Origin: Monocercomonoides exilis PA203
Taxonomy: Eukaryota > Protista > Preaxostyla
Assembly: GCA_001643675.2 (NCBI GenBank)
Contig: LSRY02000005.1
Coordinates: forward strand, 1,240,001-1,304,000
DNA: 64,000 nt
Direction: 5' to 3'
Shown piece by piece: positions 7,401-63,091 of this stretch. The notes under the pieces were generated by a model. It did no database searches, was not told where the DNA came from, and saw nothing but the letters and a program-made list of their open reading frames with translations. Within the stretch, counting starts at the first letter, position 1, and each line of letters starts with the position of its first letter. Position numbers and translations under genes: made by a program.

Positions 7401-9370
7401 GAAAAAGGGAATTGAACGAGGAAGTGGATGTGTGCAAATGGAATGGGTCAGTTGTTGAGGCGAAGGAGAGCACAGCAGAGATAAAGGATACGAGTTTTGT
7501 GAACAGCTTTGATGGAAGTCTTTCTATTGGTGGAGGAAATGTGGAGATTGAAGATGGCAAGTTTGAGAATAATAATCCGTCAATTGAAGGATATCCATCG
7601 CTGAGAAGAAATATCATCTGTTCAGATTCAGGAACATTGAATGTGATGAGTTTGAAGGGAGGAGATGGAGCTTTGCCAAACACTTCACTTTGGATCTTGA
7701 ATGAGGGATGTGCTTTTGAAGGGATTGTTTCAGAGAGGGATTCATCATTTTTCATTCCTGTGCTGGAAAGTGTGGAAGCAAAAGAAGAGACAGACAGAAT
7801 GAAGCTGACATTTAAAGGGATGCTTCTTGTGCCATGCAATCTGTCATTTTCAATTGTGAAGAGGAAGGGAGAAGAGAAAGAGATTGAAAAACATGATTTT
7901 GATTCGAATTGGTTTTTATCTGAAAGAGAAGCAGAAGGGAGCGTGGCAAAAGATCTTATCAGCAATTGCGGGAATGAAATTGAAGTGAGTGTTTCTGTTT
8001 TGTTTGGGAATTCAAATGCTCCTTCGTCAATAGATTCATTCATTCTGAAGAATGCAAATGAACCTCAAACAAGTGGAGATGAAAGGATCACAGAAGGAGG
8101 AAAAGAAAAGTCAATATGGCCAATAATTGTTATTGTAATGGGGATTGTTCTTTTTGTTGTCATTGCTGTTTCAATAATTGTTACAATCCGATGGAGAAAG
8201 CAAAAGAGAAGAACTGAAGAACTGGAGATAATTGTGGAAGACACAGTAAAGAAAGATCCGAAGGCATTTGAGATGGTGACGATGGAGATGTCACCAGAGG
8301 CGCAGTGGAGGAGAGCAGAAAGAGAGGCAGAGAAGAAGAATGAAAAGAGGATGAAGAAGAGAATATATGATACGAACATGCAGCACTCTGAGTCATCGGA
8401 GCATCTTCTCTCCGAGAGTGGCTCAACTGAATATATATTGGGAAGAGATTCAGACAAAATTCCTGATTGGGCATTAGAGAAGGATGAAGAAGAAGAGAAT
8501 CAAAAGAGAACACCATCACCATCCATCTCATCCACTTCAACAACCGATTCAGATTCGACATTTGTTCGATCAGAGAGTTTGTGCCCAACCACCTCTTCTA
8601 TGTCAAACCTTGTGGATGCAATGGCCTGTTCGTCTCCTCATGAAAAGCTGATTGTGGATCTGAGGGATTCGCTGTTTATGCTGCTTCATGGGAGGAACGA
8701 GAAGAAAGAGATGGCGATTGGCACTCTGCAGGAGCGGGAGGTGACAGCTGCTCAAGTTCTGTTCTGGGTGGCAAATGGAGCTCTTCATTCATTTGATGAA
8801 ATGGAAAATCCTCTTTCTTCACTTGCCAATCTCAGTCCTCACATTGTGTTGTTCTCTGAGCATATGGTCATCTGCATTGTGATGCACTCCGACTGTTCTT
8901 CTGATGATTCTGATTCATCATCCATCTCTTCATCGACAGTTGTGACATCTGCAAGTGATGATGATGATGAAAGTGACTCTTTGCCTTCATCTGCTTTTGA
9001 GGATGAAGATAGCTTCAAAAAAGAGTGTCTGAGGTGGAAGGCACCAGAGCTGTTGATGAACAAGAACAAGGAAGCAACAAAGGAGTCAGTGGCGTTCTCG
9101 ATTGGGATGATGCTGTGGGAGTGCTTGACCCTTCAAATCCCGTTTGGCGATTATGAGGCAGAGGTGGCTGGGCAGAAGATTGTGAATGGGGAGAGGCCGA
9201 GTGTGGATGGTGTGATGGAGTCGGATCTTGCAGAAGCAGCTGAGGGGTGCTGGGCAGGGGAAAGCGAAGCCAGGCCTAGTGTTGTTGAGCTGAAGAGGAT
9301 GTTCATTCAGCACTTCCCGAAAGAGGCAGTCGTTATGACGGTGTCAGATGCGATCGACTTTGCAACGTGA
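1435..9370 (+). pseudogene. Disrupted giant surface receptor: beta-helix/PMP-like Cys-rich ectodomain + TM + TKL-type pseudokinase C-lobe
   Basis: ORFs 1435-1767, 1736-6778 and 6800-9370 are collinear with the paralog at 14123. There is an apparent +1 frameshift near the T-run at ~1749-1758 and an in-frame TAA at 6776-6778. Motifs: GGxxY/FxxN and CGxxxxPCxT repeats, TM IWPIIVIVMGIVLFVVIAVSIIVTI, and RWKAPE...FSIGMMLWECLT..IPF kinase subdomains VIII-IX. Confidence 0.7.
8059..8697 (+). repeat. ~639-bp tract apparently identical to 20977-21615 (TM + juxtamembrane region)
   Basis: Direct comparison at a constant offset of 12918. Antisense ORFs 8065-8457/20983-21375 and 8181-8588/21099-21506 translate identically. 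Confidence 0.9.
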
Positions 9371-13996: not shown

Positions 13997-14122
13997 AAAA
14001 AATTAAATGATCAACGTGTGATCCAAACATATAACCTACGTCATTCTAAATTGATCCAAACTCAAAATATATTTAAATTCGAAATTTAACATTGTTTTGT
14101 GTTTCAGAGGAAGGGCAAGACC
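13997..14122. promoter_or_regulatory. Putative 126-bp bidirectional promoter (GRP94 / receptor-pseudokinase)
   Basis: Head-to-head ATGs at 13996 (-) and 14123 (+). Contains a TGATCCAAAC direct repeat at 14019 and 14052, plus ACGT cores. Confidence 0.45.
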
Positions 14123-17100
14123 ATGCTTTTCGCGAGTATTAGTGTCTTTATAATTATTTCCGCATTATTCTGCACAGGAGATATCGCTTGGAAAGGAGAT
14201 GAATCCAAAAAGAACGATTTGCAGAAATATGGCATTAGAAGGCTCGAAAGCATCTGCGCAACAAACAAAAATGTACATTCCTCGCACAATGTAAATGCAA
14301 TCAATGTGATGAAGTTTAATGAGCTGCAGGTTTTAGATTCATCAGACAGGTCGCCAAATACAGAAAAAAACTCAAAACGATTGCTGGTGGATGCAGAAAG
14401 GGAATTTGATCATAACTCTGTTGCTTTCGCACTCAATGATGGCAAGAATGAGTGGAGCTGGATTTGCAGCAGGATGATGGTTCTGAACTCGTCATTGGCC
14501 GTTAAACGAATAAAAATTAACCAAAAAACCACATCTGCCATTTCTGTGAGAAATGAATTATCCACATTATCTGTAAGCTATTGCATCATAAATGCGGTGA
14601 AAGAGACAGAACATTCTCCTTTTGACTGCGGAGAAGGAACGATAAGAATGACGAATATTTCATTCCAAAGGACTTTTCGGAAGCAGGCATGGCCATCTCT
14701 TGTCTCAGCAAGTTCCTGCGCACAACCTTTGACGGGAAGTGTTCATGTTTCGTGCTGCACATTTTCTTCGTTTTGTGCCTCGTTTGCGAATCCGTTCATT
14801 AGCAGTGTCGATTTGTCGTTTACCTCAGCTTCTTTTTGCAGCTTCCACAACATTTCTGTTAAGAGCAGCAGCAAGCATCCACTGCAAAAGCATTCTTTGC
14901 AGGAAAGCAAAATAGAAGGCTGCATGGTCGCTGATTGTGTTTGTCCATTTTATGGTGTTCTCATTTCTGGCTCTCGTGGTTGTGGTTTTGGCTCCTCTAA
15001 CACTTCTTTCATTCGTTCGAGAAACACCATTTCCCGTCAGAACTACACGAACAAGGCCCAATCATTTTCAGATGGAGAAATCAAATTTGAAGATTGCACT
15101 TTTACAAAATGCAGTGCCTCTCATGGTGGAGCAATATCTGTAAGCGAAAGTGCCAAGCTCACTGTTGACAAATGCACATTTTCCGAATGCACCGATACAT
15201 TTGATGGTTCATATGGTTATGGAGGTGCAATTTTTAGCAATGGAAGTGACTGCAACATCGAAAATTCATTGTTTAATTGTTGCAGAGGAGAGGGGAAAGG
15301 ATCAATCGGAGGAGCATTTGCTCATATTAAAAATGAATTTTCTTTGATAATTGGCTGTTCTTTTGAAAACTGTTCAGCAGCTTATGGAGGAAGCGTTGCA
15401 TGGTATGCTGATGGAAGTGGATCAATTTACAACACTGTATTCAAAGGAAGCAGAGCATTTAAATTTTATGCTGGAACTGTATTTCTACAGTATCCTAAAG
15501 TTGATTTTGTGATATCAAATTGTTATTTATTAAATGGAGATGCTCCACTGGGAGCAGGAGGATTTGATGTTTCCGATAATGATCACAACAAAAACGTCAA
15601 AATCCAATTTTGCTTGTTTGAGAACAATACAGTGAATAAATCGACACATGCAGCAGATATTTTTATTGGAAAGGGATTTAGTTTTGCTGATTCAACAGTT
15701 CAGATATTGCAGAGTTTTACACTTTCAACAGCCACAAGAAAAGTTGTGCAATGCGTTGAGTATGCAGAGAGATGCGGAGATAGAGCTGTTGCACATGACT
15801 CATATCTACCAACAGCTCAGCCAGAAATACACATCAGCAATTCTGGTAGAAATGTGGACACTTGTGGAGGAACAGGATCAGAGTGTCAAACAGTGGAATA
15901 TGGAGTGACAAGATGGAATTCATATTTGGGGCAGAATGTTTTGATATCGAGTGAAGAATTCAAAGAAGATATGATTGACATCGACTGGAGAAATATCGTT
16001 CTCAGCGGAGCAGAGAACAACTCAACTGCAATAAAGTGCAACGAAGCCTCGTCAAATGACTGCTTGATCTCCATCGGCAATGGTTCGCTGAATGCAAAGA
16101 GGATTCAATTTGTTTGTGTGTTCAATCGAACTGCGATTGCAGTCAGCTCCTCAGGCTCAGTTCAGTTGGGGCTGTGCAGTTTCACCAAAAGCGCCCAATC
16201 GACTCCGCCATCAACAAAATCCCTGATTCAGGTTGAAGAAGGCTCTTTAATGATGGAATTTGTGAATGTCTCTGGATTTGGATTTTCGCAAAGCTGTGCA
16301 ATTGCTTTGTCAGATTGCAAGACTATTTCTCTTTCCAATACTTCATTCTGGGATGTTGAGAGCGAGCAGAATGGCGGATGCCTGAATGCAGTGTGGAGCG
16401 AAGGGTTTGAGGATTGCTGCGATGCTTCAATAAGCGAATGCACTTTTGAGCATTGTGTTGTTTCTGGTGATGGGAATGGAGGTGGGGCGCTGTTCCTGTC
16501 GCTGCCAAACACATGCTCAGCAACAGTTTCGGAATGCTCCTTCGAAGAATGCGAGGCGCCTTTCGATTCGCAGGTTGGATTTGGGGGAGGGATCTTTCTG
16601 AATCTTGAGCACTCGGATGCAGCATTTGCCATCACAAATCCTTCTTTTTCATCAGGAAAGCCGAATAAAGCGAAGCATGGAAACAACTTGTTTGTTCAAT
16701 CTCCAGATCTGAAGAAATCGATCACAAACGAAACGCTTCCTTTTGCTTATGCGCTTGGGCATGGCTCCTTTGATGATTTATGCGGGTTCCATGGAAATGA
16801 TCACGAGCATTCAATTCCGTTGGTTCTGTTTCTGGAGGAAGTTGGAAGCACAGTCCATGTGGGAAGCGAGGATGGAGCTGATACTGTGGTATGTGGGTTC
16901 TTGGATTATCCGTGCCAGTCATTTGATTATTGCATGGAGAGGCTGGCAGAGGAAAATGCAAAAGCAATAGCTATCGTAAAATCAGCAACATTCAAAAGCG
17001 AAATGAATCTGCACAGCGTGAGCTTGAGATCATCAGATGATTTGCGAGCTGGAGTAACCTGTTTCAAGTCGCTGAATGCTGTGAGTGGAAAAGTGATGGA

Positions 17101-20100
17101 AGCCACGGGGAATGTGTCTATCGAATTAATCCACTTTTTGCTGCCATCTTCGTTCGATTCTGAGATAGAAACATTGATGTTCTTGACTTCCGAGAGCAAC
17201 CTGTCGCTGACAAAGTGTGCATTTGGGGTGCAAATGGGAGAGTCCAGCCAGATAAGTTATTGGCTGTTTCAGATGTGCGGAGGGATACTCAATATTGATG
17301 ACTGCCAAATTGATTCAGGTTGCCTCTGCCAAGCACCTATTGCAGTGAGCGAGAATGGTGCTGCTGCTCCGACAGTTATCTATCTGAAAGTGAAAGAAAT
17401 TATCCTTTGCGATTATCCTCTGATTCATGTGATATCATCATCACCATTCAAACTATTGAATGATGGTGCGACGAGTGACGAGGTTATCTCTCTTTCGCGA
17501 TGCTCTTTTGAAGGGATAACAAATGGCGATGCAAACAGCGCAGTGTTGATTTCGTCCTCAATTTCGAGCCATGTGGAGTGTTTGCATTGGAATGTCACGA
17601 ATGCCAAAGGCGCTGAGAGCATGGAAGGAGGCGCGATGAAAGTTGTTGTTGAAGCACAAGGGCAATTTAGGATGGAAAACGCCACATTCACGAAATGCTG
17701 CGCTGAGTGTGAAACAGGTGGGAAAGGAGGAGGGGTCTATTTCGACTGCTCGGCTTCCAATGCATTCTCCTTCCAGCAGATAGCCTTCGATCAGTGCTCT
17801 GCAAAACATGGGAAAAACATGTTCTTTCTTTCGTCAGACCTGAATGTTTCCATCACAAAGCAGACATTGGCGTTTGAAGTCAGCGAGACAGCGGGAGATA
17901 AAAATCTGTTTGTGGGAAACGACAGCACGAAGACAAACTTCGATCTTTGCCGATTTCTGATTGGATATGCTTCTCAAGAAATCCATCTCAGCAAGAACAG
18001 CGGGTGGGATGTTCTGCGGTGTGGGAGTGCAGAAGAGCCGTGTGCAACAATGGAGTTTGGGCAGAGCCATTTTCGTGCTTTGGAAGAGCCAGCGCAACCT
18101 CCCATGAACACTTTTCTGATCGCCGATGAAGCTCAGGTGAGCAGCGAGGTCGACATTTCAAACGTCACTGTGACTTCAGTTGATGCCAAGTCTCGCCCTG
18201 CCCTGACTTTCGGAGCGGTCATTTCACCTCAGATAGGAAAAGAAGAAGAAAGCGATTCTGTGCTGGTAAACACCGGTGCATGCACCCTTGTTAACATTGA
18301 GATCTGCTGCGGGGATGGATCTGAATGGAAGCAGACGAAGCTGATAAGCACAGCTGGCAGCGCTTTTGCAGCTCAAAGCTGCTCGTTTGCCAGCGCCTCT
18401 GAGGCAGCCATTCCTTATTGTGTTGTTGCCTGCTTGTCGGGAGCATGCGAAATATCATTCTGCTCGTTCCAATCTATTAAGTGCAAAAGTCACATTCTGA
18501 TGGCATCGCATGATAGCAACATTGACTTGACAAATGTCTCGATGAGCAACATGGAACTGATGGGCAAAAGCATTGTTGCAGTGTTGGCGCAGGCTGAGAG
18601 GAGAGGAGAGTCGCAGAGATTGAATGAAGGCAGCAGTCCAACAGTGCAACTGAAATGCTGCACGCTCCATTCGCTTCTCCAAAATGCACCATCTGAGCCG
18701 TCCATCATCAGCTGCACTGGCGGCGAGCCTTGCAGCGTGTCTGTGCAAAACACATCGATGAAGAACTGTGGAAGCAGCCAAAGCGAGAAAGGTGGAGGAA
18801 TGATCATGAGCCTGAGCGAAGGAGGCTTTTTCGAGTGCTGTTTTTCTGCTGTCTCGGAGTGTTTCTGCTCAGAAAGTGGAAGAGGAGGCGCAATATTCCT
18901 GGATTGCTCGTCAATCACGAGCGATGGTCCTTTGCCGTTCCTCTTGGAAAACACAACTTTTGTGAGCAACAAGGCGCTCGCAGGACGAGACCTGTATGTG
19001 AGATGCACAAATATCAAATCTCAAATCAGCATTGAACTCTTCCAGCTGGACTTCAGACCTCCGTTTGTTCGGGATCTTGCGATGTGGGGATGCACAGCAC
19101 AGAATTATTATGACGAGGAAGATTTGTTGGAGCTGATTGTTGGGTATCAGAGCGAGACAATATTTGCGTCTTCTTCAGCTGACAACGCCTCTGACACACG
19201 CCAGTGTGGGGCGATCAGCGGGCCATGTTCTTCGTTGAATGTTGCGTTGTCACACATCATTCCCTCTGCTTACAGCAATTTGCTCATCGAAAAAAGCGCC
19301 CTGGTGTCTGGCGAAGCAAGTGCGCGTGATGTGACGATCAAGTCGCTGGAGCAGGAAAGCGACAAAGGGGTGCTCCACCTGAACTGCTGCATCGAGAGCA
19401 AGACGGGCAGTCTCGTTGCGTGCTCGTCGAGAGTGAAAGTGGAGTTTCTGACGATTCTGTTTGGGAATGCTTTTTCTTCTTCTCATTCCAGCTTAATATC
19501 GCTTGCTGATGGCAACTTGTCGATTGCAGACACAATCTTTGCTCAAGAAGCTTCTGGTGGAAACTCTGGAATTGAACTGAATTGCTCGATTGTTGAAATG
19601 AGCGGTGGAAGATTGACGATGTCTGACTGCACTTTTGCTGGCCTCTGTTTCAGTTCTTCATGCCTGGCAGCAAGTTGTGGGGAATATTTCTCGTGTGCAT
19701 TTCTGAATTTCACAGATGTTATTTCTGGAGTGCTGATGGATTTCCACGATCTGGCAAAGCTGTCCATGCAGCAGGTGCATGCATCCAATTGCAGCGCTCA
19801 GCGATCAGGCCTCGTTCTTCGCAACTGCAAAGACTGCCAGCTCCAGAACATTCAGATGAGAGGCACTCGGAGCGGATCAAACATGATTGTGCTTTCCTCA
19901 GATGGTTCGGAAGGGCATTCAAACATCCAGGGCATTCATTTGGAATTCGATGATACTCGCGTTTTAAGTGAATCGTTGGTTTCTGTCGAATGTAAAGATT
20001 CAGATGTTGAGATGAATTTCTTGGCTATTTCAAACGCAGTGCTTGGGGATGGGTGCGCAGTGAGCGTGACATCGAATGCTTCGGCATTCCATTTGAAGCA

Positions 20101-22363
20101 GCCTTCATTCCAAAACATAACCCGAGATTCGCTGGGCCCGTGCTGCTTGGCTGCTTCATCTTCGTCTTCGTCTTCGTCTTTGTTGCTGGAATTGGAGAAC
20201 TGCTCGAACAAAAAGTGTGTTTCGCCATCTGAAAAGGGGAGCATTGCAGCGTTGGCAGATTTGGCAGATGCTTGCATGTCTTCGTGTGTGTTCGACGGAG
20301 CAACAAGCGCACCAGAGTTGAGAGCGAACGATGAGCGATCAGAAGAGCTGTGCCAGTGGAGCGGATCGATGGTTGATCTTCAGAATTGCACAGGAAGGAT
20401 AATGGACACGAGCATTGCCAACTCATCGAAAGGAGGGCTGTCTGTGTCAGGCGGAAGCATCTCCGTGCGATTTGGATTGTTTGCCAACAACAGCCCGAAT
20501 GCAGCAGGCTATCCATCCATGAGGAACAACATCGTCTGTTCAGACCATGCGCTGCTGAACATTCAAAGTCTGAAAGGCGGAGATGGCTTAAAAGAGAACT
20601 CATCACTTTGGGTATTGAACTTGGGATGCAGTCTTTCTGGAATTGCTTCAGAAAGAGCCTCTCCATTCTTCATTCCGCAGCTTCACTCAGTGAAGTCTCA
20701 TCAGCAAGGCAACACCCTTGCGATTGATCTTGCTGGCTCCTTGCTCCTGCCCTGTGGCTTGTCCCTCCAGGTTGATTCCTTCGATGGCTCGGTTCACAAT
20801 CTGCAGGTGTATCCGCTGCAAGCAGAAGAGTTTGCAGGCGAAACAGAGATTCACACAGCCATTCCAGCATCAATTGTTACAACTGCGTCTGATGCAACAG
20901 AAGTGTCTGTGAAGATATTATTTGGAATGGTCGAATCTCCAGCTTCAACACAGTCATTCGTTTTGAAGAATGCAAGTGAACCTCAAACAAGTGGAGATGA
21001 AAGGATCACAGAAGGAGGAAAAGAAAAGTCAATATGGCCAATAATTGTTATTGTAATGGGGATTGTTCTTTTTGTTGTCATTGCTGTTTCAATAATTGTT
21101 ACAATCCGATGGAGAAAGCAAAAGAGAAGAACTGAAGAACTGGAGATAATTGTGGAAGACACAGTAAAGAAAGATCCGAAGGCATTTGAGATGGTGACGA
21201 TGGAGATGTCACCAGAGGCGCAGTGGAGGAGAGCAGAAAGAGAGGCAGAGAAGAAGAATGAAAAGAGGATGAAGAAGAGAATATATGATACGAACATGCA
21301 GCACTCTGAGTCATCGGAGCATCTTCTCTCCGAGAGTGGCTCAACTGAATATATATTGGGAAGAGATTCAGACAAAATTCCTGATTGGGCATTAGAGAAG
21401 GATGAAGAAGAAGAGAATCAAAAGAGAACACCATCACCATCCATCTCATCCACTTCAACAACCGATTCAGATTCGACATTTGTTCGATCAGAGAGTTTGT
21501 GCCCAACCACCTCTTCTATGTCAAACCTTGTGGATGCAATGGCCTGTTCGTCTCCTCATGAAAAGCTGATTGTGGATCTGAGGGATTCGCTGTTTATGCT
21601 GCTTCATGGGAGGAATGAGAAGAAAGAGATGGCGATTGGCTCATTGAAGGAGAGGGAGCAGACTGCTGCTCAAGTTCTGTTCTGGGTGGCTAATCTCGCG
21701 CTTCACTCGTTTGATGAAATGGAAAATCCTCTTTCTTCACTTGCCAATCTCAGTCCTCACATTGTGTTGTTCTCTGAGCATATGGTGATTTGTATTGTGA
21801 TGCACTCTGACTTATTGTCAGATGATGATTCAGACTCGTCATCCATTTCATCGTCAACTGTTGTCACATCTGCCAGTGATGATAATGATGATAGAAACTC
21901 TCTGCCTTCTTCAGCGTTCGAGGATGATGAGGACAATCGATATGAGTGCATGCGGTGGAAGGCGCCTGAGCTGCAGATGAACAAGAAGATGGGAGCAACA
22001 AAAGAATCAGTGTCATTTTCGATCGGGATGATGCTGTGGGAGTGTCTGACCCTTCAAATCCCATTTGGAGAATACGAGGCAGAGGTGGCTGGGCAGAAAA
22101 TAGTCAATGGAGAAAGACCTTCACTGGAGATTATTAGAAGGAGTTCTAAGTTGGACATTGTGAAGACTTGCCTGGAACAGAATAGCCAGTGTCGAGGAAC
22201 ATTGACTGGATTGAAAAGAGAGTTAATTCAAGGATTTCCACCAGGAGCATTGATAATGACAATTTCGGATGCAATCACACTTGACCCAGACAGTGGGATT
22301 GAGAGTGAGAATGTTAAAGAAAATAGTTCTTTGTGCACAAACAGCGCAACAACTGCCAAATGA
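14123..22363 (+). CDS. Giant single-pass receptor-like protein (~2746 aa): signal peptide, beta-helix/PMP-like Cys-rich ectodomain, TM, TKL-type pseudokinase
   Basis: Uninterrupted ORF with N-terminal MLFASISVFIIISALFC, GGAI/FxxN motifs, repeated CGxxxxPCxT modules, TM, and MRWKAPEL..FSIGMMLWECLTLQIPF. No GxGxxG, VAIK, HRD or DFG motifs. Confidence 0.9.
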   Translation: MLFASISVFIIISALFCTGDIAWKGDESKKNDLQKYGIRRLESICATNKNVHSSHNVNAINVMKFNELQVLDSSDRSPNTEKNSKRLLVDAEREFDHNSVAFALNDGKNEWSWICSRMMVLNSSLAVKRIKINQKTTSAISVRNELSTLSVSYCIINAVKETEHSPFDCGEGTIRMTNISFQRTFRKQAWPSLVSASSCAQPLTGSVHVSCCTFSSFCASFANPFISSVDLSFTSASFCSFHNISVKSSSKHPLQKHSLQESKIEGCMVADCVCPFYGVLISGSRGCGFGSSNTSFIRSRNTISRQNYTNKAQSFSDGEIKFEDCTFTKCSASHGGAISVSESAKLTVDKCTFSECTDTFDGSYGYGGAIFSNGSDCNIENSLFNCCRGEGKGSIGGAFAHIKNEFSLIIGCSFENCSAAYGGSVAWYADGSGSIYNTVFKGSRAFKFYAGTVFLQYPKVDFVISNCYLLNGDAPLGAGGFDVSDNDHNKNVKIQFCLFENNTVNKSTHAADIFIGKGFSFADSTVQILQSFTLSTATRKVVQCVEYAERCGDRAVAHDSYLPTAQPEIHISNSGRNVDTCGGTGSECQTVEYGVTRWNSYLGQNVLISSEEFKEDMIDIDWRNIVLSGAENNSTAIKCNEASSNDCLISIGNGSLNAKRIQFVCVFNRTAIAVSSSGSVQLGLCSFTKSAQSTPPSTKSLIQVEEGSLMMEFVNVSGFGFSQSCAIALSDCKTISLSNTSFWDVESEQNGGCLNAVWSEGFEDCCDASISECTFEHCVVSGDGNGGGALFLSLPNTCSATVSECSFEECEAPFDSQVGFGGGIFLNLEHSDAAFAITNPSFSSGKPNKAKHGNNLFVQSPDLKKSITNETLPFAYALGHGSFDDLCGFHGNDHEHSIPLVLFLEEVGSTVHVGSEDGADTVVCGFLDYPCQSFDYCMERLAEENAKAIAIVKSATFKSEMNLHSVSLRSSDDLRAGVTCFKSLNAVSGKVMEATGNVSIELIHFLLPSSFDSEIETLMFLTSESNLSLTKCAFGVQMGESSQISYWLFQMCGGILNIDDCQIDSGCLCQAPIAVSENGAAAPTVIYLKVKEIILCDYPLIHVISSSPFKLLNDGATSDEVISLSRCSFEGITNGDANSAVLISSSISSHVECLHWNVTNAKGAESMEGGAMKVVVEAQGQFRMENATFTKCCAECETGGKGGGVYFDCSASNAFSFQQIAFDQCSAKHGKNMFFLSSDLNVSITKQTLAFEVSETAGDKNLFVGNDSTKTNFDLCRFLIGYASQEIHLSKNSGWDVLRCGSAEEPCATMEFGQSHFRALEEPAQPPMNTFLIADEAQVSSEVDISNVTVTSVDAKSRPALTFGAVISPQIGKEEESDSVLVNTGACTLVNIEICCGDGSEWKQTKLISTAGSAFAAQSCSFASASEAAIPYCVVACLSGACEISFCSFQSIKCKSHILMASHDSNIDLTNVSMSNMELMGKSIVAVLAQAERRGESQRLNEGSSPTVQLKCCTLHSLLQNAPSEPSIISCTGGEPCSVSVQNTSMKNCGSSQSEKGGGMIMSLSEGGFFECCFSAVSECFCSESGRGGAIFLDCSSITSDGPLPFLLENTTFVSNKALAGRDLYVRCTNIKSQISIELFQLDFRPPFVRDLAMWGCTAQNYYDEEDLLELIVGYQSETIFASSSADNASDTRQCGAISGPCSSLNVALSHIIPSAYSNLLIEKSALVSGEASARDVTIKSLEQESDKGVLHLNCCIESKTGSLVACSSRVKVEFLTILFGNAFSSSHSSLISLADGNLSIADTIFAQEASGGNSGIELNCSIVEMSGGRLTMSDCTFAGLCFSSSCLAASCGEYFSCAFLNFTDVISGVLMDFHDLAKLSMQQVHASNCSAQRSGLVLRNCKDCQLQNIQMRGTRSGSNMIVLSSDGSEGHSNIQGIHLEFDDTRVLSESLVSVECKDSDVEMNFLAISNAVLGDGCAVSVTSNASAFHLKQPSFQNITRDSLGPCCLAASSSSSSSSLLLELENCSNKKCVSPSEKGSIAALADLADACMSSCVFDGATSAPELRANDERSEELCQWSGSMVDLQNCTGRIMDTSIANSSKGGLSVSGGSISVRFGLFANNSPNAAGYPSMRNNIVCSDHALLNIQSLKGGDGLKENSSLWVLNLGCSLSGIASERASPFFIPQLHSVKSHQQGNTLAIDLAGSLLLPCGLSLQVDSFDGSVHNLQVYPLQAEEFAGETEIHTAIPASIVTTASDATEVSVKILFGMVESPASTQSFVLKNASEPQTSGDERITEGGKEKSIWPIIVIVMGIVLFVVIAVSIIVTIRWRKQKRRTEELEIIVEDTVKKDPKAFEMVTMEMSPEAQWRRAEREAEKKNEKRMKKRIYDTNMQHSESSEHLLSESGSTEYILGRDSDKIPDWALEKDEEEENQKRTPSPSISSTSTTDSDSTFVRSESLCPTTSSMSNLVDAMACSSPHEKLIVDLRDSLFMLLHGRNEKKEMAIGSLKEREQTAAQVLFWVANLALHSFDEMENPLSSLANLSPHIVLFSEHMVICIVMHSDLLSDDDSDSSSISSSTVVTSASDDNDDRNSLPSSAFEDDEDNRYECMRWKAPELQMNKKMGATKESVSFSIGMMLWECLTLQIPFGEYEAEVAGQKIVNGERPSLEIIRRSSKLDIVKTCLEQNSQCRGTLTGLKRELIQGFPPGALIMTISDAITLDPDSGIESENVKENSSLCTNSATTAK
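20977..21615 (+). repeat. Second copy of the ~639-bp identical TM/juxtamembrane tract
   Basis: Matches 8059-8697. Confidence 0.9.
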
Positions 22364-23974: not shown

Positions 23975-24198
23975 GTTCTTTTTGTTTAATTTTATAATAA
24001 AGAAAAAATTTCATATTTCAATCAAATTTATGTTCCAACGAACGAAACTTCACTTAAATGGAAATAATAACATTGTCAAGATTTTGTCTTCATTACAGCA
24101 AAATTTGGTAAGTGGAAATAGAAATTTGATCGAAATATGAAATTTTTATTCTATTTGAAAATTAAACAAAAGGAACTTTTAATAAAAATTTAGACATA
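23975..24198 (+). repeat. Dispersed AT-rich repeat homologous to ~54795-55026 (boundaries approximate)
   Basis: Shared blocks, e.g. TGAAATTTTTATT.TATTTGAAAATT..ACAAAAGGAACTTTT and AAACTT.ACT.AAATGGA. Confidence 0.6.
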
Positions 24199-24798
24199 TT
24201 TTGCAATAATTGGAATCAATGTTCTTTTGCTTCTATTTGGAACAATTTGAATTAGTATTTTTGCTTCCTCTTTATCGCATCTTTTCTCAATAGCTCCAAA
24301 AATCCATATTTGTTTCTTCCTCCTTACTCTTTTGTACTTCCTCCTTCTCCATATTGCCTCATCAATTTGAACAATAACTCCTTCACCACCTAGAGAAATA
24401 TTTTGTTTGTTGATTAGTTCTGTTGCAACTGTTCTTATTACACTCCCCCAATATCCTATTGAAGATTTCGTAACATCTGTGATCAGTTTGATTTGAGTAA
24501 CTGATAAACCTATCCATATCATCAAAATAATAAGAAGAATTTGGTTCAATTTCAGATGAGATCAGAAAAAAACTGTGTTCTTGAATGCTGAACGTTTGAT
24601 TGAGCACTTTTTTCATTTGAAAAATTTGACATATGTTGATTTTTTACATATGATCATTTTTCGAGCGCATTTTGGACAAGTCGCATTTTGATTATACATC
24701 ACTTTCTCGTAGAACCATTTCCAGGTTGAATGAAAGTCAAAAAATATTCGAAACATTGATGAAATAGATTCCTTTTTGCATTTATCTGGTTCGATCAT
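24190..24798 (-). pseudogene. Merlin/IS1595 (ISXO2-like) DDE transposase remnant, frameshifted and 3'-truncated
   Basis: LGGEGVIVQIDEAIWRRRKYKR...WIFGAIEK...IVPNRSKRTLIPIIAKYV signature, and an upstream CPKC Zn-ribbon fragment in another frame. Confidence 0.85.
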
Positions 24799-25392: not shown

Positions 25393-28300
25393 TTACTGAA
25401 TTTCAGAAAGCACGTTTTTCAAAACAGTTATTGCACTGCGATGGAGGTATTGATGAAACGGAAGAAGCAGCCTGGCATACTCAATTAATTTTGGAAGCTC
25501 TCTTTATTATGCGTAGTCAAACCACGTGCCAATGAGTTGTTCAATGAATAATAATAATAATAATAATTAAGAAATCACATTTAAAACTAAAAATTTTCAG
25601 AATAAAATCTCAAACCTTTCGAATTTAGGATAATAGCCTTCGTAAAGTCGAATAAGAACTTCTTCGAAATTGTTCAAGTCAATCAAAAAAGCTTTTATTT
25701 TTGCGTCTTCAATGAACCTTTGAGGAGCAATAACGACATTTGCTGAAGAATGGCTGGATGATAACTCAGTTGGAAAAATGGAATCAGAAATTGGATCAGA
25801 AGAAGAAGAAAAAGAAGCAAAAGAAGGATTTGACACTTCTTCCTCTGAATTTTTCGCTGTATCTGGCAAAGATGCGGATGAGCTTTGTGCTGTCTCAAGT
25901 AAAATTTTAGGCTCTTTAGGTGATGGTACATACCTCCAAATTGATGAACCAGCAGAAGGAGGAGAATAATTCAAAGAAGAAGAAGAAGAAGAAGAAGAAG
26001 AAGAAGGCAACTCTTCAGAACAGCCCTTTTCAAGATCAGGAGGAGCCAACGCTGTTTTCAGCAGACTCGTCTGCACGCTGTTTTTGCCTTCTTCTTCTGC
26101 ATCTTTGCTCAAATCAGGCTGAAGCGCAAGGAGCCTTCTCTTGTACACCTCATAAAACGTGTGCATAATGCTGTCCAATTTCTTAAACTCCGCCGCCGCC
26201 CTCAGCACATAGCTCCGCACCATGCTGTTCAGATACCACCGCTCGCCGTTGCTGCCTGTCTGGAAAATAAGCGAGCGGTCCTGCAGATACTCCACCAGCT
26301 CTGCCAGCCTGCCTTCTTTCTGAAGCAGCTGCTCAGCGGCTGCACGGTCGAACGTGCCTCGACACGGGCCCAGGCGCATCAGGTCGTTCAAGGGCTCCTC
26401 TTTGATGGGGCTCTTTGAAGAATCCCCCGTCAGCAGCTCGTGGAACACGCTCAGCCGAAAGGGAGTGTGCGAATGCACCGCCAGCTGGTTTGCGACCGAC
26501 AGGATTGTCATATTCGGCCGGGAGCGCAGGAGTGCAATGGTCGAGCGGATGCAGTGCGGCAGGTCGCCACACACCGACGCGAGTGTGTCGGCGTCCTTGT
26601 GCGAGACGAATGCGGAGGGGCTCTTCTGCGCAGAGGTGCCCAGCGCAGCCAGAATCAGCTGGACCGACTCGCTCCGCTGCAGCGGCGCAAGGCTCAGTTC
26701 CAACGAGCGCACGCCGGCATCGACGGTGAGGCGGCTGCGGGCTGTGGCAAGAACAACCACGTCGCTCTCCTTTGGCAACAGCCCTGCGATCTGCTCGGCG
26801 GATGTTGCATTCTCTATGAGCAGTACGTGAGAGGGGACGATTATTGCGTTGTCTTCTGGTTGAGATAGAGAGAATGATGCAGTGGACAAAGTGGATGCAG
26901 ACAGCTTTGATTGATTTGAAGTGTTTGAGATGTTATGAGAAATGGTTGAATGAAGTGAAGAAGAAACAGAAGAAGAAGCAGAAGATGACGAAGGCAGCAG
27001 AGATTGCGTTTCTGAAGTGATTGAAGGAGGAGGAAGAGGAGGGCGAAGTGGCTTTTCATGTGAAATGTGGCTTATTTGATCAACTGGGATGAGTGTGCGA
27101 AATGACGAAGAGTGAATGGGAGTGGCAGACATGGAAGAATCAGAGGGGGACAATTGACGGGAAGAGAAAGGAAAAGAGTGAGAAGAGAATGACCCATTGA
27201 ATGGGGAAATACTCCGTTCAACACGACTTATTGAAGAAGAAGAAGAAGAAGATGATGATGATGACGAAGCTTTTTCAGGAACGCTATTTTCATGTGACGA
27301 TGATGACAAAGAAGCAGAAGAGTTCAAAGCAAGAAGCGACGGCGGTTGAGAGGCAAACATCGAGCGGGAGCGTGCACGTATGAGTGGCTGAGGAGGAGGA
27401 AGAGCAGAAGGCATTGGAGAAGTCGGGATTGAGATTGGTGTGGTGCTTTTTGCAGGCTCAGGGGTGGTTGAATTGGAAGGAAGCGAGTGAAGTGGAAATG
27501 AAGTGAACGATGAAGTGAACACAGGAGGCGGTGCAGGAGGAAGCGATTGGCGGGTAAGAGGTCTTTTTGGTCTGATCACAAAAGAAGGCGGAGGGGGAAG
27601 ATTTGGCAAAATTGCTGAAGAGCTGCCTGCTTCCACAGGAAAAGGAGAAGACGAAAACACATGAGGCGCTGTCCGAAAGAGCTTCCAGTACAGTTCTGCC
27701 ACTGCCTCGCTGTTGTGCTGCGCCACTTCGGTGACTCCAATCCCGCGCGACAGAACAGCCTGTTCCATCGCTTCTTGCACAGACAGCTTTGTTAGTCCTG
27801 GCCCAAGGACGTTTATCGTCAGTCCTCGGTTTGGATTCATCCCTCCAAAGACATTAAACAGCTGCTGCGCAAGCGCAGATTTTCCCACAGACAGCCCTCC
27901 GTAGATTACAATCACTCTGCAAAGTCCCTTAGTCTCTCTGACAAATTGCATCACCAACTGAATTTCTGCTTTTCTTCCAATAAATTCAGTTGGGCCAGAT
28001 CCAGCATAATCTTGAAGAGATGCAGAAATTCTAGGTGGAGAAGCAGAACGACTTCTATTTTTCACAGAGAGATATGATGGTGAAGGAGATGCAGAACGTC
28101 CAACTCTATTTGTAGGAAGTTGAGTTAGAGGAGTTGCAACCGTTGATGAACTTATGCTTGTCGATTTTGAAAAATAAACTGACATTCGCAAACGCTCTTC
28201 AATCATATCTGAATCCATTCGCTTTGTTTCTCCATGATCTCTATAATATGCTTCAGTTTTTGTTTGATTTGTGTAGTAAATTGGTGAATATCCTTTTGAT

Positions 28301-28719
28301 ACTGTAATTCGAATAATACATAGTGAAGATTCCGATGATTCCGACGATTCCGAAATAACTGGAAGAAATTTGACGCAATAAATTGACGGATCCACTTGCG
28401 GTTGTATCCTATTTATTATCCCATCAATCCCGAGTCGAATATCATCCCGATCTTTCCTTGCTGGAAGAAGTCCTTGAACAATGCCCTTTTTATCTACTCC
28501 AAAAATAATACATCCTCCATTACTGTTTAAGAAAGCATTCAAATGTTTTTCGGATTCATCAAGAATAAATCTGGTAATCTTTTGTTGATTAATGATTGGA
28601 AAACATAATGTGTCTGAATGTGTTAAAAAAGGAATAAGCTCTCCTTTCTTTATAGGTGTAGAAGGCAAAGGTGTTTGATGCGCTATATTAGCGTTAGAGA
28701 CTTGGAAATCATCCTTCAT
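25393..28719 (-). CDS. Schlafen (AlbA_2)-domain + STAND/NB-ARC (AP-ATPase) NTPase fusion protein; exons 28719-25616 and 25501-25393, ~1070 aa
   Basis: AFLNSNGGCIIFGVDKKGIVQG (Schlafen/AlbA_2); FIGRKAEI; Walker A GGLSVGKS; Walker B VLLIENA; VLATAR; CGDLP; winged helix LQDRSLI...WYLNSMVR. A 114-nt GT-AG intron links an in-frame last exon (ELPKLIEYARLLLPF...Q*). Confidence 0.85.
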
Positions 28720-28876
28720 CTAATTCAATATTCTTTTATTATGGCCATGGAAAAATCAGAAAACAGCGAATTTCGAATAAGTTCACACTTTATTCGAGGC
28801 TTTTTAAAAAAACAGATTGCCAAAAAAAAAAAGATATATAATATTTTTTTGTCATTATTTTTTGTCTTTTTGGCAA
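28720..28876. promoter_or_regulatory. Putative 157-bp bidirectional promoter (Schlafen-STAND / RING E3)
   Basis: Head-to-head ATGs at 28719 (-) and 28877 (+). Confidence 0.4.
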
Positions 28877-31800
28877 ATGGGGCCAAACACTTCAGCACCC
28901 CAGCGCCAAGTACGTCAAAGAGCTCAAATAACTGATAGAGCCGTCATAGGCTTGTAGAAATACGTTTTTGTATCGCTTATAAATGATGTATCGTTATAGA
29001 TCTTATTTACACTCTTGCAACTGGTAATACTTTCGAAATTGCAAGAAGGTATAATATTTTATTAGTAAATATGTTTATTAATAATTTCTTGCAATAATTC
29101 ATGTTGTACGAAAGACAACGCGCAGAAATACCTCGGACTTTAAAGTACACAAATGCAATAAAGTCCTTAGTCTGGGTTCATAAAGATGTTTGCAACAATT
29201 TGCGTTTTAACTGCATTTATCTTTTTCCATTAAAAGACTATTCGACCATATCCTATAAACGTATCTGCTGACCAATATGGATTAGAATTTGAATTCGATG
29301 CATTAGCACCATGTAAAATAACAATTTATTTTTTAGCAGAAGATAAGCTGCAAGCAGTTCCTATGCCCAATGCATCAAAATGTGGTCCGTCAAACAGAGT
29401 CGTATATAGACCGCAATACCGCAGCTATTTTAGACCACAGGTATTTCATCGTTCAGGACTGCGAATGATGTATCGTTCAGAATCAGCAGATTTCATTTCC
29501 TTGCGTGCGCTGGAATTGCAGCCACAATACACTGTACAATCGCCACCTCCCGATGCTCATCATCGAAGACGTCACACACTAAATGAACGAACAATATCTT
29601 CTCCTCAGACGAGGATTGCGTTTCCTTGTCCGATGCTGATTGACATTCAGACACTCGACAATGAAAGTGCACCTCTAATAACACCAGCTCCACATCTCGT
29701 ATCCGATCCTTCTTCTTCGAGCTCTTCAAGCAACTTCAGCAATACAAGCAACACGTTAAGTACATCCACTTCCTCATCTGAATCATCTGATCCTTCTCGT
29801 TCGCGTAGCGTAGCTCCTGATTTGCCACCAACGTTTATGATTCGCCAGCAGCTAACTTATGCGACCTTCCATTTGAACAACCACGAAGATAGGCACAGCT
29901 CTGCAGCTGAAACATCCGCCTTGAATTATTCTTCTGCTTCTCATTCAAATTTTTCTCCGTTGTACTCATCACAACCATCAAGTAGGATGTCTGCTTCAAG
30001 ACAGTCACCTCACTCATCATTGAGACAGCGTCCGTCTTCGCAGCTCCCCTTCTCCTCGTTTGCCCCACTTCCCACACTGACATTTTCTCAAGTCCAGCCG
30101 TCGTCCAGTTATCAGATCGATGGAGCACAATATAATCCCAGCCAAGCAAATCCGTTTGATCTTGACGATGGCTCTTCCTTCCCAACAAGCGTCTTTGCGC
30201 AGATGGTACCCCAGCAGCAGCGCTCTTCTGAAGTGCACATTGGAGAGAGTGCAGATGGCCAGTCAGCTGAAGAGAGAGAAAGATTGCTCCATTCAAATAT
30301 TCCTCAGTCTTCTCATTTAGCTCATACAAAACACAGAAATAGGCGCACGCGAAGAAGCGAGACTGAGCCGGCTGAGGAAGTGTTTGACCGACTCGACAGG
30401 AATAATTACGAGAAATTCAATGACAACGATGATGATGATGATGACGACGACGACGATAACGACGATGATGAAAGCAAAGAGGAGCAATCAGAAGAGACAG
30501 AGCAAGAAGTCATGGGCGGTTTTGAGTTCGAAGACGACGATCAGCTTGACCCAGTTCTGCAGGCTGTGCTGATGCAGTCTATTGCAGACAACAAACAGCA
30601 GAAGAATGAGCAGCAGTCACAACAACAGCAATCACAGCAGAGTCAAGAAGAAGAAGAAGAAGAACAACAACATCATCATCATCATCGTCGTCATCATCAT
30701 CACAAGAGGAAAAGCCAATCTTTGAGTTCGCAGTCAGAGGAAGATGAGATCAGTGCCGAGGAGCAGAGTGACGAAAGTGGAGAGAGCAAACGCAATTTGC
30801 CTGATTTTGCTGAAGATGATGATATGCTTCAGATGGAAGCAAAAACAGATGCGAGTGAAAATATGAGTCAGAAAGAACGCAAATTAGAAAGCGATTCACA
30901 GAGGCATTCAACAAAACTATCAACCTTGTCGTCATCATCATCTTCATCATCATCTTCTTCTTCTTCGACTCAGCCATCCATCTCGAATTTGCTTTCTTCG
31001 CCACGTTTGCAATCAGAACAGGGCGAAATGCAATCCACATCATCCACACACACAACCCCATACGATTCCTATGAATGCGAAATGTCTTCTTTTCCTTCTT
31101 CTTCCTCTTCCTCCTCCTCTTCCTCCTCTTCTTCTTCTTCTTCCTTCTCATCTTCACCCCATCCATCTTCAAACATATTTCCTCTTCCAGGCGATGAGCT
31201 AGGCCCAAGAATTGTCTCAGTCTCTTTCATCCCTCGGCTCTTCCCAGGCGAACAACCACCAATTTCTGTAACTATTCTTCCTCCTTCTGTCTCATCGGAG
31301 GCAAGCTCAGCTGCTGCCTCTCCTTCTCTGGGGATGCTTGGCGATTCGGCAAGTGTGTCATCATCATCATCTTCTTCTTCATCATCATCTTCATCTTCTT
31401 CTTCTTCTTCTTCTTCTTCCTTTTCCTCTTCTTCTTCTTCACACCTCAACCAAAACAAACACTCACAGCTTTCTCTTCCATTTGAAACCTCCTTTGCCTC
31501 CCAGTCTTCTCTACAGACTGCGGCGCGTGCTTCTCTTTCTCCTTCTTCTTCTTCTCTTCCTCTTTCTTCTCTTCCCTTTTCAATCAATGTGATGGCACAA
31601 AAGTACTTTTTTGCTGGAAGGCTTTTTGAAGTTAAGCCTATATTTGGGCTGCCTCAAAACACAGAAAATGAGAAAAGATTGAAGCAGGCGAAAGAAGAGG
31701 AAGAAAAAAATAAAGATGGAATTAATGGAATTAAGACAAATCTTGCTAATGAATCTTCAGCTTCATCATCATCATCATCTTCTTCTTCCTCTTCCTCTTC

Positions 31801-32113
31801 TTCTTCATCATCTTCACCTTCACCACTTCAGATGTCTCAAACCTCTGACACTTCACATCCTCTAAATTCCACAACACAATCTTCCGCTGAGTCGATTTCT
31901 CCTTCGTCTACACCTTCTGTGGATGAAAGGTGTCTTATTTGCTTGACAAACCGCCGCTGTATTACTCTTATTCCTTGCATGCACTGTTCATTGTGTGCGG
32001 AATGTGCTGTTGAGCTACTTCGTTCTGATTCATTTGGACAAAAATGTCCTGTCTGTAGAACAAAAATTAAATCACTTTTATTAATTGATGTTCATAATAA
32101 TTCGGCAAAATGA
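28877..32113 (+). CDS. MGRN1/RNF157/LOG2-like RING E3 ubiquitin ligase (short 5' exons, long final exon)
   Basis: MGPNTS start; exon pieces IKSLVWVHKD and GLEFEFDALAPCKITIYFLAED; QKYFFAGRLFEVKPIFGL; C-terminal C3HC4 RING CLIC...PCMHCSLCAEC...CPVCR. The exact first donor site is uncertain. Confidence 0.8.
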
Positions 32114-32169: not shown

Positions 32170-33953
32170 ATGTGGATATTTTTCTTATTTTTGTTTGTTT
32201 CAGATGTTTCATCAACAAAATGCAATCGTAAAAATGTTGATTTTGTATGTCCAAATTCTAATGGTTGTGTGAATGAAACATGCACTGTTTGCACAAGCGA
32301 TGAACACTGCAGTTTGCAATCATATTGCTTAAAAGGACAATGCACACACAGAACTTTGTTTCCAATGAGCGGATACAGCGTTCTTACTATATTTGCGTTG
32401 TTTTTCGTTTCTATCCTTGGAGGAGCAACGGGACTTGGTGGTGGTTCATTTGCAGTTCCTGTTCTTGCTCTTTGTTCTGCTTTTTCATCAGTTCAAGCTG
32501 TTGCAATTTCCCAAGCTACAATTCTCGGTAATGGTATAATTTCATTTTTTGCTGGAGCAATTAGTCGACATCCAACGAGAAATCGTCCGCGAATTGCATT
32601 TGATGTTGTTTTCGTTTTGTTTCCTTCTTTACTCTGTGGGTCATTTATTGGTGTTTTCGTAGCACCATTACTACCGCAATGGGTCATTATGATTTTGATG
32701 GTTTTATTTTTAATATCAACAATTTCAAGTACTATTAAAAGGGTTTGAAATAGAAAATTTTGTTCATCAGCTTTTCATCCAATTATATCCTCTTCAATTC
32801 TTTATTTTTTTTTCCCCATAAAATTAAGGCCGTTAAAGAACTGAGGCAGGAACGAATGTTTCGCAAGAAAAACTCAAGTGGAAATTTGGGTGATGTATCA
32901 AAATCAACACACGAAATGGTACCATTCGATGATAAAAAAAGGCCAATATCTATGGCTGTTTCATCAAATCAAATAGACTGTAAGAGTACTGATTTGAACG
33001 AACACAAAATTTCATCCATCAACAATGAGGAGGAAATTGGTGCAGACAATGCTGTATTGCATTCTGTAAAAGACATTGTAAATGAAGAGGAAGAAACAAA
33101 AGAATCTGAACAGCATCAAAAAAACAAAGACTGTTCCAAAGGAATGCAAGAAAATGAAACATCTTCTCCAGAAACAGATGAAGGTTCACTGAAAAAGGCG
33201 ACGCCAAAGAAAGATCGAGATGCTCTTGAATTGGAGCGCATTTTAAAGAAAGAGCAGCATTTCCCAGTGATCAAACTTCTGTTCTGTTTCGGGAACTGGT
33301 GCTTGCTTGTCTTTGTGTCGTTTGTGCGTGGCGGGAAAGGAGGGGCAAAATCTCTCTTTGGCGTTGAGAAGTGCTCGATGATTGACTGGCTGTCGTTTGG
33401 CTTGTTTATTTTTGTCTCCATCCTTCTGGCGCTCTTTGCAGGGCTTGTGCTGATGCAAGAGGAGAGGAAGAAGAAGCGGCTCAACTACCCATTCGCCATC
33501 GGAGACGTGCACTGGAAGCCGAAGACGGCTGTGCTGCTGCCCATTGCGTGCATCGCGGCTGGGTTTATTGCAGGGCTGCTTGGCATCGGAGGAGCACTTG
33601 TCACTTCACCTGTCCTGTTGGAGATGGGGATCCTTGTTCCAGTTGTTACTGCCACAACATCGGCGCTGCTGCTCGCGACGTCGGCATCGGCTACTGCCCA
33701 GTTTGCGGTGTCTTCCTTGCTGCCGATCGATTTTGGGGTGTTTTTCTTTGCGATTGGCGTGGCGGGGGCGTTGATTGGCCTGCTTGTTATTTCAAGGCTG
33801 GCTGTGAAGTATCATCGCTATTCCATTCTGCTATTTAGTATTCTGGTTCTCTATTGCGTCTCACTCATAATGAGTGGGTTCTATGGAATATACTCCGTCG
33901 TCCTTATCTTTACGAATGGCGGAGCAATTGGCTTTAAATCACCTTGCGCTTGA
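32170..33953 (+). CDS. TauE/SafE-family sulfite exporter-like membrane protein; exons 32170-32742 and 32829-33953
   Basis: GGATGLGGGSFAVP and AGLLGIGGALVTSPVLL repeats, RPRIAFD motif, multiple TMs, and an in-phase GT-AG intron. Confidence 0.85.
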
Positions 33954-63000: not shown

Positions 63001-63091
63001 TCTTCAGGAGGCGCATAAGCTTTCTATATTTGGTCAAGAAATATTAGGCAATCTGAATTCTAAAAATCCGCATCGTCCTTATCAATATTAG
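60058..63091 (+). CDS. Piwi/Argonaute family protein; exons 60058-60277, 60332-60761, 60869-61117, 61257-61495, 61686-63091
   Basis: N domain (LLANSY, FQYSVEFTP), PAZ (VTKYSSKYQTFRI, TIKDYYFSRYEI), TGIPEE..DFRLMK, MID (RYKQMK, PSQCV, QITHKIGG) and PIWI (IDV, KEIV, YRDGVGD, NPPPGTVVD, AHKL). All introns are in phase. Confidence 0.93.

Follow-up and report, generated by a model that had tools for sequence, protein, structure and literature searches.

A Schlafen-NB-ARC gene of Monocercomonoides exilis with replaced catalytic residues, beside a paralogue that keeps them

A gene on the reverse strand of a 64,000-nucleotide stretch of the genome of the gut flagellate Monocercomonoides exilis (the window) joins an N-terminal Schlafen/AlbA_2 domain to an NB-ARC nucleotide-binding module. 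The question is whether its product could by itself link the sensing of infection to a shut-off of translation, as the original prediction proposed, or whether it serves another function. Innate immunity in protists is poorly known. That first reading overlooked two features: the catalytic residues of the Schlafen domain are gone, and no sensor domain follows the NB-ARC module.

The gene has two exons (Table 1). Its first exon lies within an open reading frame of 1040 codons (28719-25597, reverse strand), and the two exons together encode a protein of about 1070 amino acids. One RNA contig (27276-28631) spans most of the AlbA_2 domain and the Walker A motif without gaps and with 0 letter differences, and a second (26014-27222) likewise has 0 differences; the gap between them falls in low-complexity sequence. 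The contigs derive from four runs of one study, and the splice joint at 25616 from one run. Although these contigs are not proof of one transcript, exon 1 is a single open frame, so that such proof is unneeded. Both domains are encoded on that exon, and one RNA contig joins AlbA_2 to Walker A; the predicted effector-STAND fusion is thus real, and transcripts do not separate its parts. The spliceosomal intron, also predicted, coincides in position and phase with the last shared intron of the M. exilis paralogue MONOS_2961, and the Blattamonas locus has a GT..AG at the equivalent place. Contamination was ruled out, and the proposed eukaryotic origin upheld, by this spliced intron common to oxymonad homologues, by the eukaryotic neighbours and by the tree position. 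A further RNA "joint" of 1198 nt, with GA..GA ends and 24-base sides, was dismissed as a repeat artefact. Exon 1 (as the open reading frame, the last 5 codons of which are intronic) and exon 2 were searched separately rather than as a joined spliced model, and the 35 residues of exon 2 gave no alignment. GC at third codon positions (26110-28719) goes from 0.23 in AlbA_2 to 0.76 in the second half of NB-ARC; MONOS_2961 shows a like trend along the gene.

Table 1. Features of the Schlafen-NB-ARC gene (positions within the window; aa, residues of the protein)
Feature	Position	Strand	Basis
Whole gene: exon 1, 114-nt intron, exon 2	28719-25393	-	
Exon 1, codons 1-1035, last codon split (phase 2)	25616..28719	-	open reading frame, RNA contigs
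Intron, 114 nt, GT..AG	25502..25615	-	splice seen in RNA
Exon 2, 35 further residues and stop	25393..25501	-	RNA splice joint
Schlafen/AlbA_2 domain, aa ~22-182, fold intact, putative pseudo-nuclease	28174..28656	-	PF04326, predicted fold
Site of E-x4-E-x-K motif, aa 32-41, 0/3 residues kept	28597..28626	-	family and SLFN13 alignments
G-V-x-D-D-G loop, equivalent of SLFN13 D248 is Lys (aa 77)	28483..28503	-	alignments
NB-ARC, first half, aa 243-352	27664..27993	-	AAA_16, E 2.6e-4
Walker A, intact, aa 274-281	27900-27877	-	motif alignment
Ser/Pro low-complexity insert in nucleotide-binding domain, aa 353-628	26836..27663	-	transcribed, predicted disordered
NB-ARC, second half, Walker B to winged helix and first arm helix	26110..26835	-	AfsR match, fold
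Second low-complexity insert, aa ~871-998, and arm helix, aa 999-1035	25616..26109	-	model and motifs

Among the neighbours in the window, a RING (C3HC4) gene (28850-32113, forward strand) has spliced introns at 28946-28995, 29046-29111 and 29188-29236, upstream of its listed open reading frame. The RNA contig of this gene begins near 28850, head-to-head with the Schlafen-NB-ARC gene and about 130 bp from the start of the latter, so that a shared promoter is possible. Next to it, two open reading frames at 32170-33953 (forward), probably exons, encode a TauE/SafE sulfite-exporter-like membrane protein. On the other side, a 119-aa open reading frame (24190-24549, reverse) looks by eye like a fragment of an IS1595/Merlin-type transposase, with no Pfam match at 1e-3. 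Very large Cys-rich single-transmembrane proteins with a degenerate kinase domain at the end are encoded at 14099-22363 and 6800-9370 (both forward), and an Argonaute/Piwi gene, one of four Piwi-domain loci in the genome, lies at 61718-63091 (forward).

The assignment of the N-terminal domain to the Schlafen fold holds, and the motifs quoted for it and for the NTPase are present in the sequence. Pfam SLFN_AlbA_2 (PF04326) matches residues 57-169 with an E-value of 3e-12 and 47.5 bits (cut-off 25.3), and the AlphaFold model of the domain reaches a pLDDT of 89.6. Its best structural match, and thus the closest solved fold, is the AlbA_2 domain of SAMD9 (7ksp, Z 14.3), albeit tied within about 1 Z with SLFN11/12 (Z 13.4 for SLFN11; 12-13 for SLFN11/12/5); the next unrelated fold scores 5.5. 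In SLFN13 the active site is formed by E205, E210 and D248, and mutation of each lowers or abolishes cleavage (PMC5862951). According to the 5yd0 alignment (offset 13), these residues correspond to the E-x4-E-x-K motif and to the latter of the two acids in G-V-x-D-D-G. Almost all relatives, MONOS_2961 and Blattamonas among them, possess the catalytic residues; in the 25393-28719 copy the equivalents of E, E, K and D are all replaced (4/4), the first three being absent in either alignment register and the Asp position being occupied by Lys. Neither a sequencing error nor a hidden intron explains the lost motif, as both motif sites lie in an RNA contig with 0 differences, the letters of which confirm the replacements. 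Judged by these residues, the Schlafen domain of this copy is a pseudo-nuclease, and we refer to the gene as the dead copy. The proposed shut-off of translation by its product is unlikely.

The loss of catalytic residues is selective: the dead copy keeps 29 of the 39 AlbA_2 columns conserved in the family, and 7 of the 10 changed columns lie in or adjoin the catalytic motifs. With Blattamonas as the reference, unique changes in AlbA_2 number 46 in the dead copy versus 6 in MONOS_2961 (p 1e-8), and in NB-ARC 46 versus 33 (p 0.18).

The second half of the fusion had been described as a full NB-ARC module, which is correct for the predicted fold but not for the continuity of the domain. The AlphaFold model matches the plant NLR WRR4A with a Z of 19.9 (rmsd 4.0, 311 aligned residues), and also NRC2, ZAR1 and CED-4, while Foldseek matches include Apaf-1, NRC2 and Roq1; the NBD-HD1-WHD fold is thus present in the model. 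The domain is split by an insert of about 275 residues between Walker A and Walker B, 47% Ser/Pro and modelled with low confidence. Pfam NB-ARC misses the dead copy with its split domain, on which AAA_16 alone appears, under its cut-off; a Pfam NB-ARC search of the M. exilis genome misses both paralogues, and compact family members exceed the threshold (P0003, 36.5 bits versus 23.5). A second insert of about 130 residues interrupts the arm helices, and about 60 disordered residues separate AlbA_2 from the P-loop. The oxymonad homologues, MONOS_2961 and Blattamonas, carry inserts in equivalent places. The suggested affinity of the NTPase to AfsR was corroborated by a sequence-based match of residues 632-847 (PDB 8k60, E 2e-4). 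Sensor-1 T-x-R with GxP (aa 718-721) and the Walker A Lys are all intact. Walker B reads hhhhEN (aa 632-637), with Glu replacing Asp as in 35 of 37 family members, and the MHD site of the winged helix reads L-N-S (aa 830-832), the canonical motif being absent; both departures are family-wide traits. The last arm helix carries a conserved D-x-x-N-F-E-E.

The gene stops 35 residues past this helix, and Pfam detected no C-terminal TPR, LRR or WD40 repeat. A SIR2-like domain, a TPR array and an OB fold were likewise absent from the protein by Pfam and model, Pfam found neither wHTH and BTAD at the N-terminus nor TPR at the C-terminus (only the NTPase half matches AfsR), and PADLOC returned no match. 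The protein therefore has the effector-STAND order implied by the term NLR-like, but lacks the sensor repeat and, on its domain content, is not a complete NLR. An autonomous receptor that cuts tRNA or rRNA upon sensing infection would be in keeping with that order, with the precedent of SAMD9/Avs9 and with the existence of TPR-sensor members, the bacterial P0011 and, from other eukaryotes, P0034 and P0042. For the dead copy we nevertheless regard it as highly improbable, as its catalytic residues are missing at sites where single mutations kill the activity of SLFN13 (PMC5862951) and abolish killing by Avs9 (PMC12680541), it has no sensor domain, and M. exilis has two copies, not an expanded receptor repertoire. 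Such a reading suits MONOS_2961 better. As far as their sequences tell, P0042 (L013) and P0034 (L014) are better candidates for NLR-like receptors with a Schlafen effector; both have the whole AlbA_2-NB-ARC-TPR series and keep the catalytic residues, and their contigs carry the eukaryotic neighbours Tctex-1 and ERp29.

Searches of the M. exilis genome (82.3 Mb, 101 contigs) yielded exactly two AlbA_2-NB-ARC members, the dead copy and a paralogue on contig C13, the sequence of which agrees fully with the database protein MONOS_2961. The two share 45-47% identity and are sisters in the tree (support 100/92), which places the duplication after the split from Blattamonas. The dead copy retains the ancestral last intron and has lost an AlbA_2-internal intron common to MONOS_2961 and Blattamonas; it also lacks the long C-terminal tail of MONOS_2961. 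Together with the long branch (0.84 versus 0.26) and the large low-complexity inserts, the lost intron and tail are what one would expect of a duplicate slowly decaying under relaxed selection, without any specific role. We consider such decay unlikely, since a frame of 1040 codons has stayed open, spliced and expressed at 45% identity, the changes cluster at catalytic columns, and the rise in the NB-ARC rate is not significant.

The gene pair belongs to a larger family. While a word-index search with residues 1-360 gave no matches, an exhaustive HMMER search with domain mapping recovered about 40 proteins in which AlbA_2 is followed by NB-ARC of this type. Carriers are Blattamonas, Paratrimastix, 'Eukaryota sp. 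TZLM1-RC', Cavostelium, Stereomyxa, Mastigamoeba, Pelomyxa (two), Mastigella and the source of a CFRG identifier, which we take to be Creolimax; the low-copy family spreads over Metamonada, Amoebozoa and Holozoa. Most members have 620-800 residues and end soon after the winged helix, TPR arrays being found in the bacterial P0011 and in the small clade of P0034 and P0042, which has eukaryotic neighbours. Searching with a profile of the family alignment gained little, and the ESM Atlas offered generic NB-ARC clusters only. Trees of HMM-defined domain segments, inserts omitted, recovered Preaxostyla (98/89) and Archamoebae (99/99) and set the eukaryotic rows apart from the bacterial ones; their deep nodes lack resolution and identify no donor. 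The pattern is in line with a long vertical descent from an AlbA_2-NB-ARC-TPR protein of bacterial type, with the sensor lost on the way.

Two annotated fusions in the family call for caution. We do not accept the LRR region on Blattamonas P0002 ('NLR Family CARD Domain Containing protein') as a sensor, because the 'intron' of 150 nt that links it (L020, 7810-7960) reads as an in-frame continuation plus a stop, resembling the end of MONOS_2961, so that the model is probably fused to an adjoining gene, presumably LRRC34-like. In P0004 of Paratrimastix, AlbA_2-NB-ARC is annotated behind a GCN2 kinase, which is probably a gene-model fusion as well; a genuine link to this tRNA-sensing kinase, if true, would be notable.

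Catalytic residues are also missing from P0006 and P0013. These two form a clade of their own (100/97), sister to the active P0007, and an AU test rejected their grouping with the M. exilis dead copy (p 1.3e-62); within the family the catalytic residues were thus lost twice, independently. All three (3/3) have Lys or Arg at the catalytic Asp. The P0006/P0013 clade has been kept in two species about 40% apart. P0006 and the active P0007 were both present in two samples, on contigs that agree in composition (36% GC, tetranucleotide r 0.98), and are therefore probably a pair of one organism; an active partner of P0013 was sought and not found. Replacement of an acid by a basic residue at the former metal site, with fold and basic residues retained, could point to a stand-alone, neofunctionalised protein, a nucleotide-switched RNA- or DNA-binding regulator or an inhibitor decoy that works independently of the paralogue; SLFN5, which left tested tRNAs uncleaved (PMC5862951), offers a precedent. 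We hold this to be a minority possibility, because, wherever the genomic surroundings of a dead copy were open to inspection, there was an active paralogue as well, and because the structural residues of the dead lobes are as conserved as in active members.

The reading that we prefer is a different function, that of a partner. STAND modules such as those of Apaf-1, CED-4, NLRs and Avs oligomerise on nucleotide exchange. In mammalian Schlafens two lobes grip the RNA, one of them catalytic, the active site of SLFN13 residing in the C-lobe only (PMC5862951), and in PUCH a catalytic TOFU-2 and a non-catalytic TOFU-1 are separate proteins (PMC10567574). By analogy, there is about an even chance that the dead copy forms a complex with the active MONOS_2961, as a subunit without catalysis of its own. 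In this scenario an ancient protist AlbA_2-NB-ARC gene was duplicated, and the Schlafen domain of one copy became a pseudo-nuclease; NB-ARC modules, oligomerising as apoptosomes and resistosomes do when nucleotide is exchanged, would gather single Schlafen lobes; and the dead copy would join the ring of MONOS_2961 and supply in trans a lobe that contacts RNA but does not cut it. Such a lobe may restrain a potentially lethal RNase or select its substrate, for which tRNA and rRNA are the likely candidates. Given the lack of a sensor repeat, the disordered inserts, or else a separate factor in trans, would have to relay the trigger.

The selective catalytic loss, the faster change of AlbA_2 but not of NB-ARC, and an open, expressed frame at 45-47% identity to MONOS_2961 argue for a partner subunit, as do the separate second dead clade, the association of P0006 with P0007, and the Lys/Arg at the Asp position. 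On the other side, Blattamonas and most sampled protists have the active copy only, so that a dead partner is not required; two origins are a small number; the non-canonical Walker B and MHD are family-wide, and switch behaviour is only predicted; and the lost C-terminal tail is equally compatible with drift. That the family as a whole has a role in defence or stress-induced suicide seems to us slightly favoured. Far more tentative, and rather doubtful as a whole, is the broad picture of an ancient protist system, passed on vertically, whose NB-ARC ring without a sensor would build an RNase from single Schlafen lobes and whose dead paralogues would be repeatedly evolved, dedicated regulatory subunits, resembling paired NLRs with an RNA-cutting output in defence or stress-induced translation arrest.

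Among known systems, NTPases of plant NLRs, Apaf-1 and CED-4 have the same NBD-HD1-WHD fold (Z 13-20), whereas the M. exilis protein lacks an LRR or WD40 sensor, has an altered MHD and carries a Schlafen-type effector; CED-4 sets the precedent for a sensor-less member. The closest prokaryotic relatives of the NTPase are AfsR/SARP and other bacterial NB-ARC-TPR proteins, and the AlbA_2-NB-ARC-TPR protein P0011 agrees with the M. exilis protein in its first two domains. The latter differs from this group by the absence of wHTH/BTAD and TPR and by Glu-Asn in Walker B instead of Asp-Asn or Asp-Asp.

The combination of Schlafen and STAND, put forward as a candidate undescribed system, is already on record: SAMD9/9L and Avs9 join an effector of Schlafen type to a STAND NTPase (PMC12680541, PMC5445408), and bNACHT34 is a bacterial example (10.1101/2022.07.19.500537) with NACHT, the sister clade, in place of NB-ARC. 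SAMD9/SAMD9L and Avs9 likewise place one AlbA_2 domain N-terminal to a STAND NTPase; the M. exilis protein has neither SAM, SIR2, TPR nor OB, its NTPase is of the AfsR/NB-ARC type, and its catalytic residues are lost. The SAMD9 study reported no SAMD9-like structural matches in protozoa (PMC12680541). An architecture search, suggested as a check, showed the arrangement to be widespread in protists. Our literature searches, whose coverage is incomplete, turned up no publication about the family, about eukaryotic proteins that combine AlbA_2 and NB-ARC, or about Schlafens of Monocercomonoides. The family would extend Schlafen-STAND fusions well past animals and bacteria, with an NTPase clade differing from that of SAMD9.

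Vertebrate SLFN5/11/12/13/14 share the lobe fold and the catalytic motif mapped above, but have two lobes rather than one and an SF1 helicase where M. exilis has NB-ARC; the dead copy resembles their non-catalytic N-lobe, as in SLFN13. PUCH of Caenorhabditis elegans (TOFU-1/TOFU-2/SLFL-3/4) also combines catalytic and non-catalytic single-lobe Schlafen paralogues of one organism; its subunits have no STAND module, and complex formation, demonstrated there, would take place in M. exilis by analogy. What the present gene adds is the putative dead partner of an active paralogue and the recurrence of such pairs. With a natural pair of an active and a dead copy in one genome, one can directly test how Schlafen nucleases of a single lobe come together and are kept in check, which is equally at issue for SAMD9, SLFN11-14 and PUCH.
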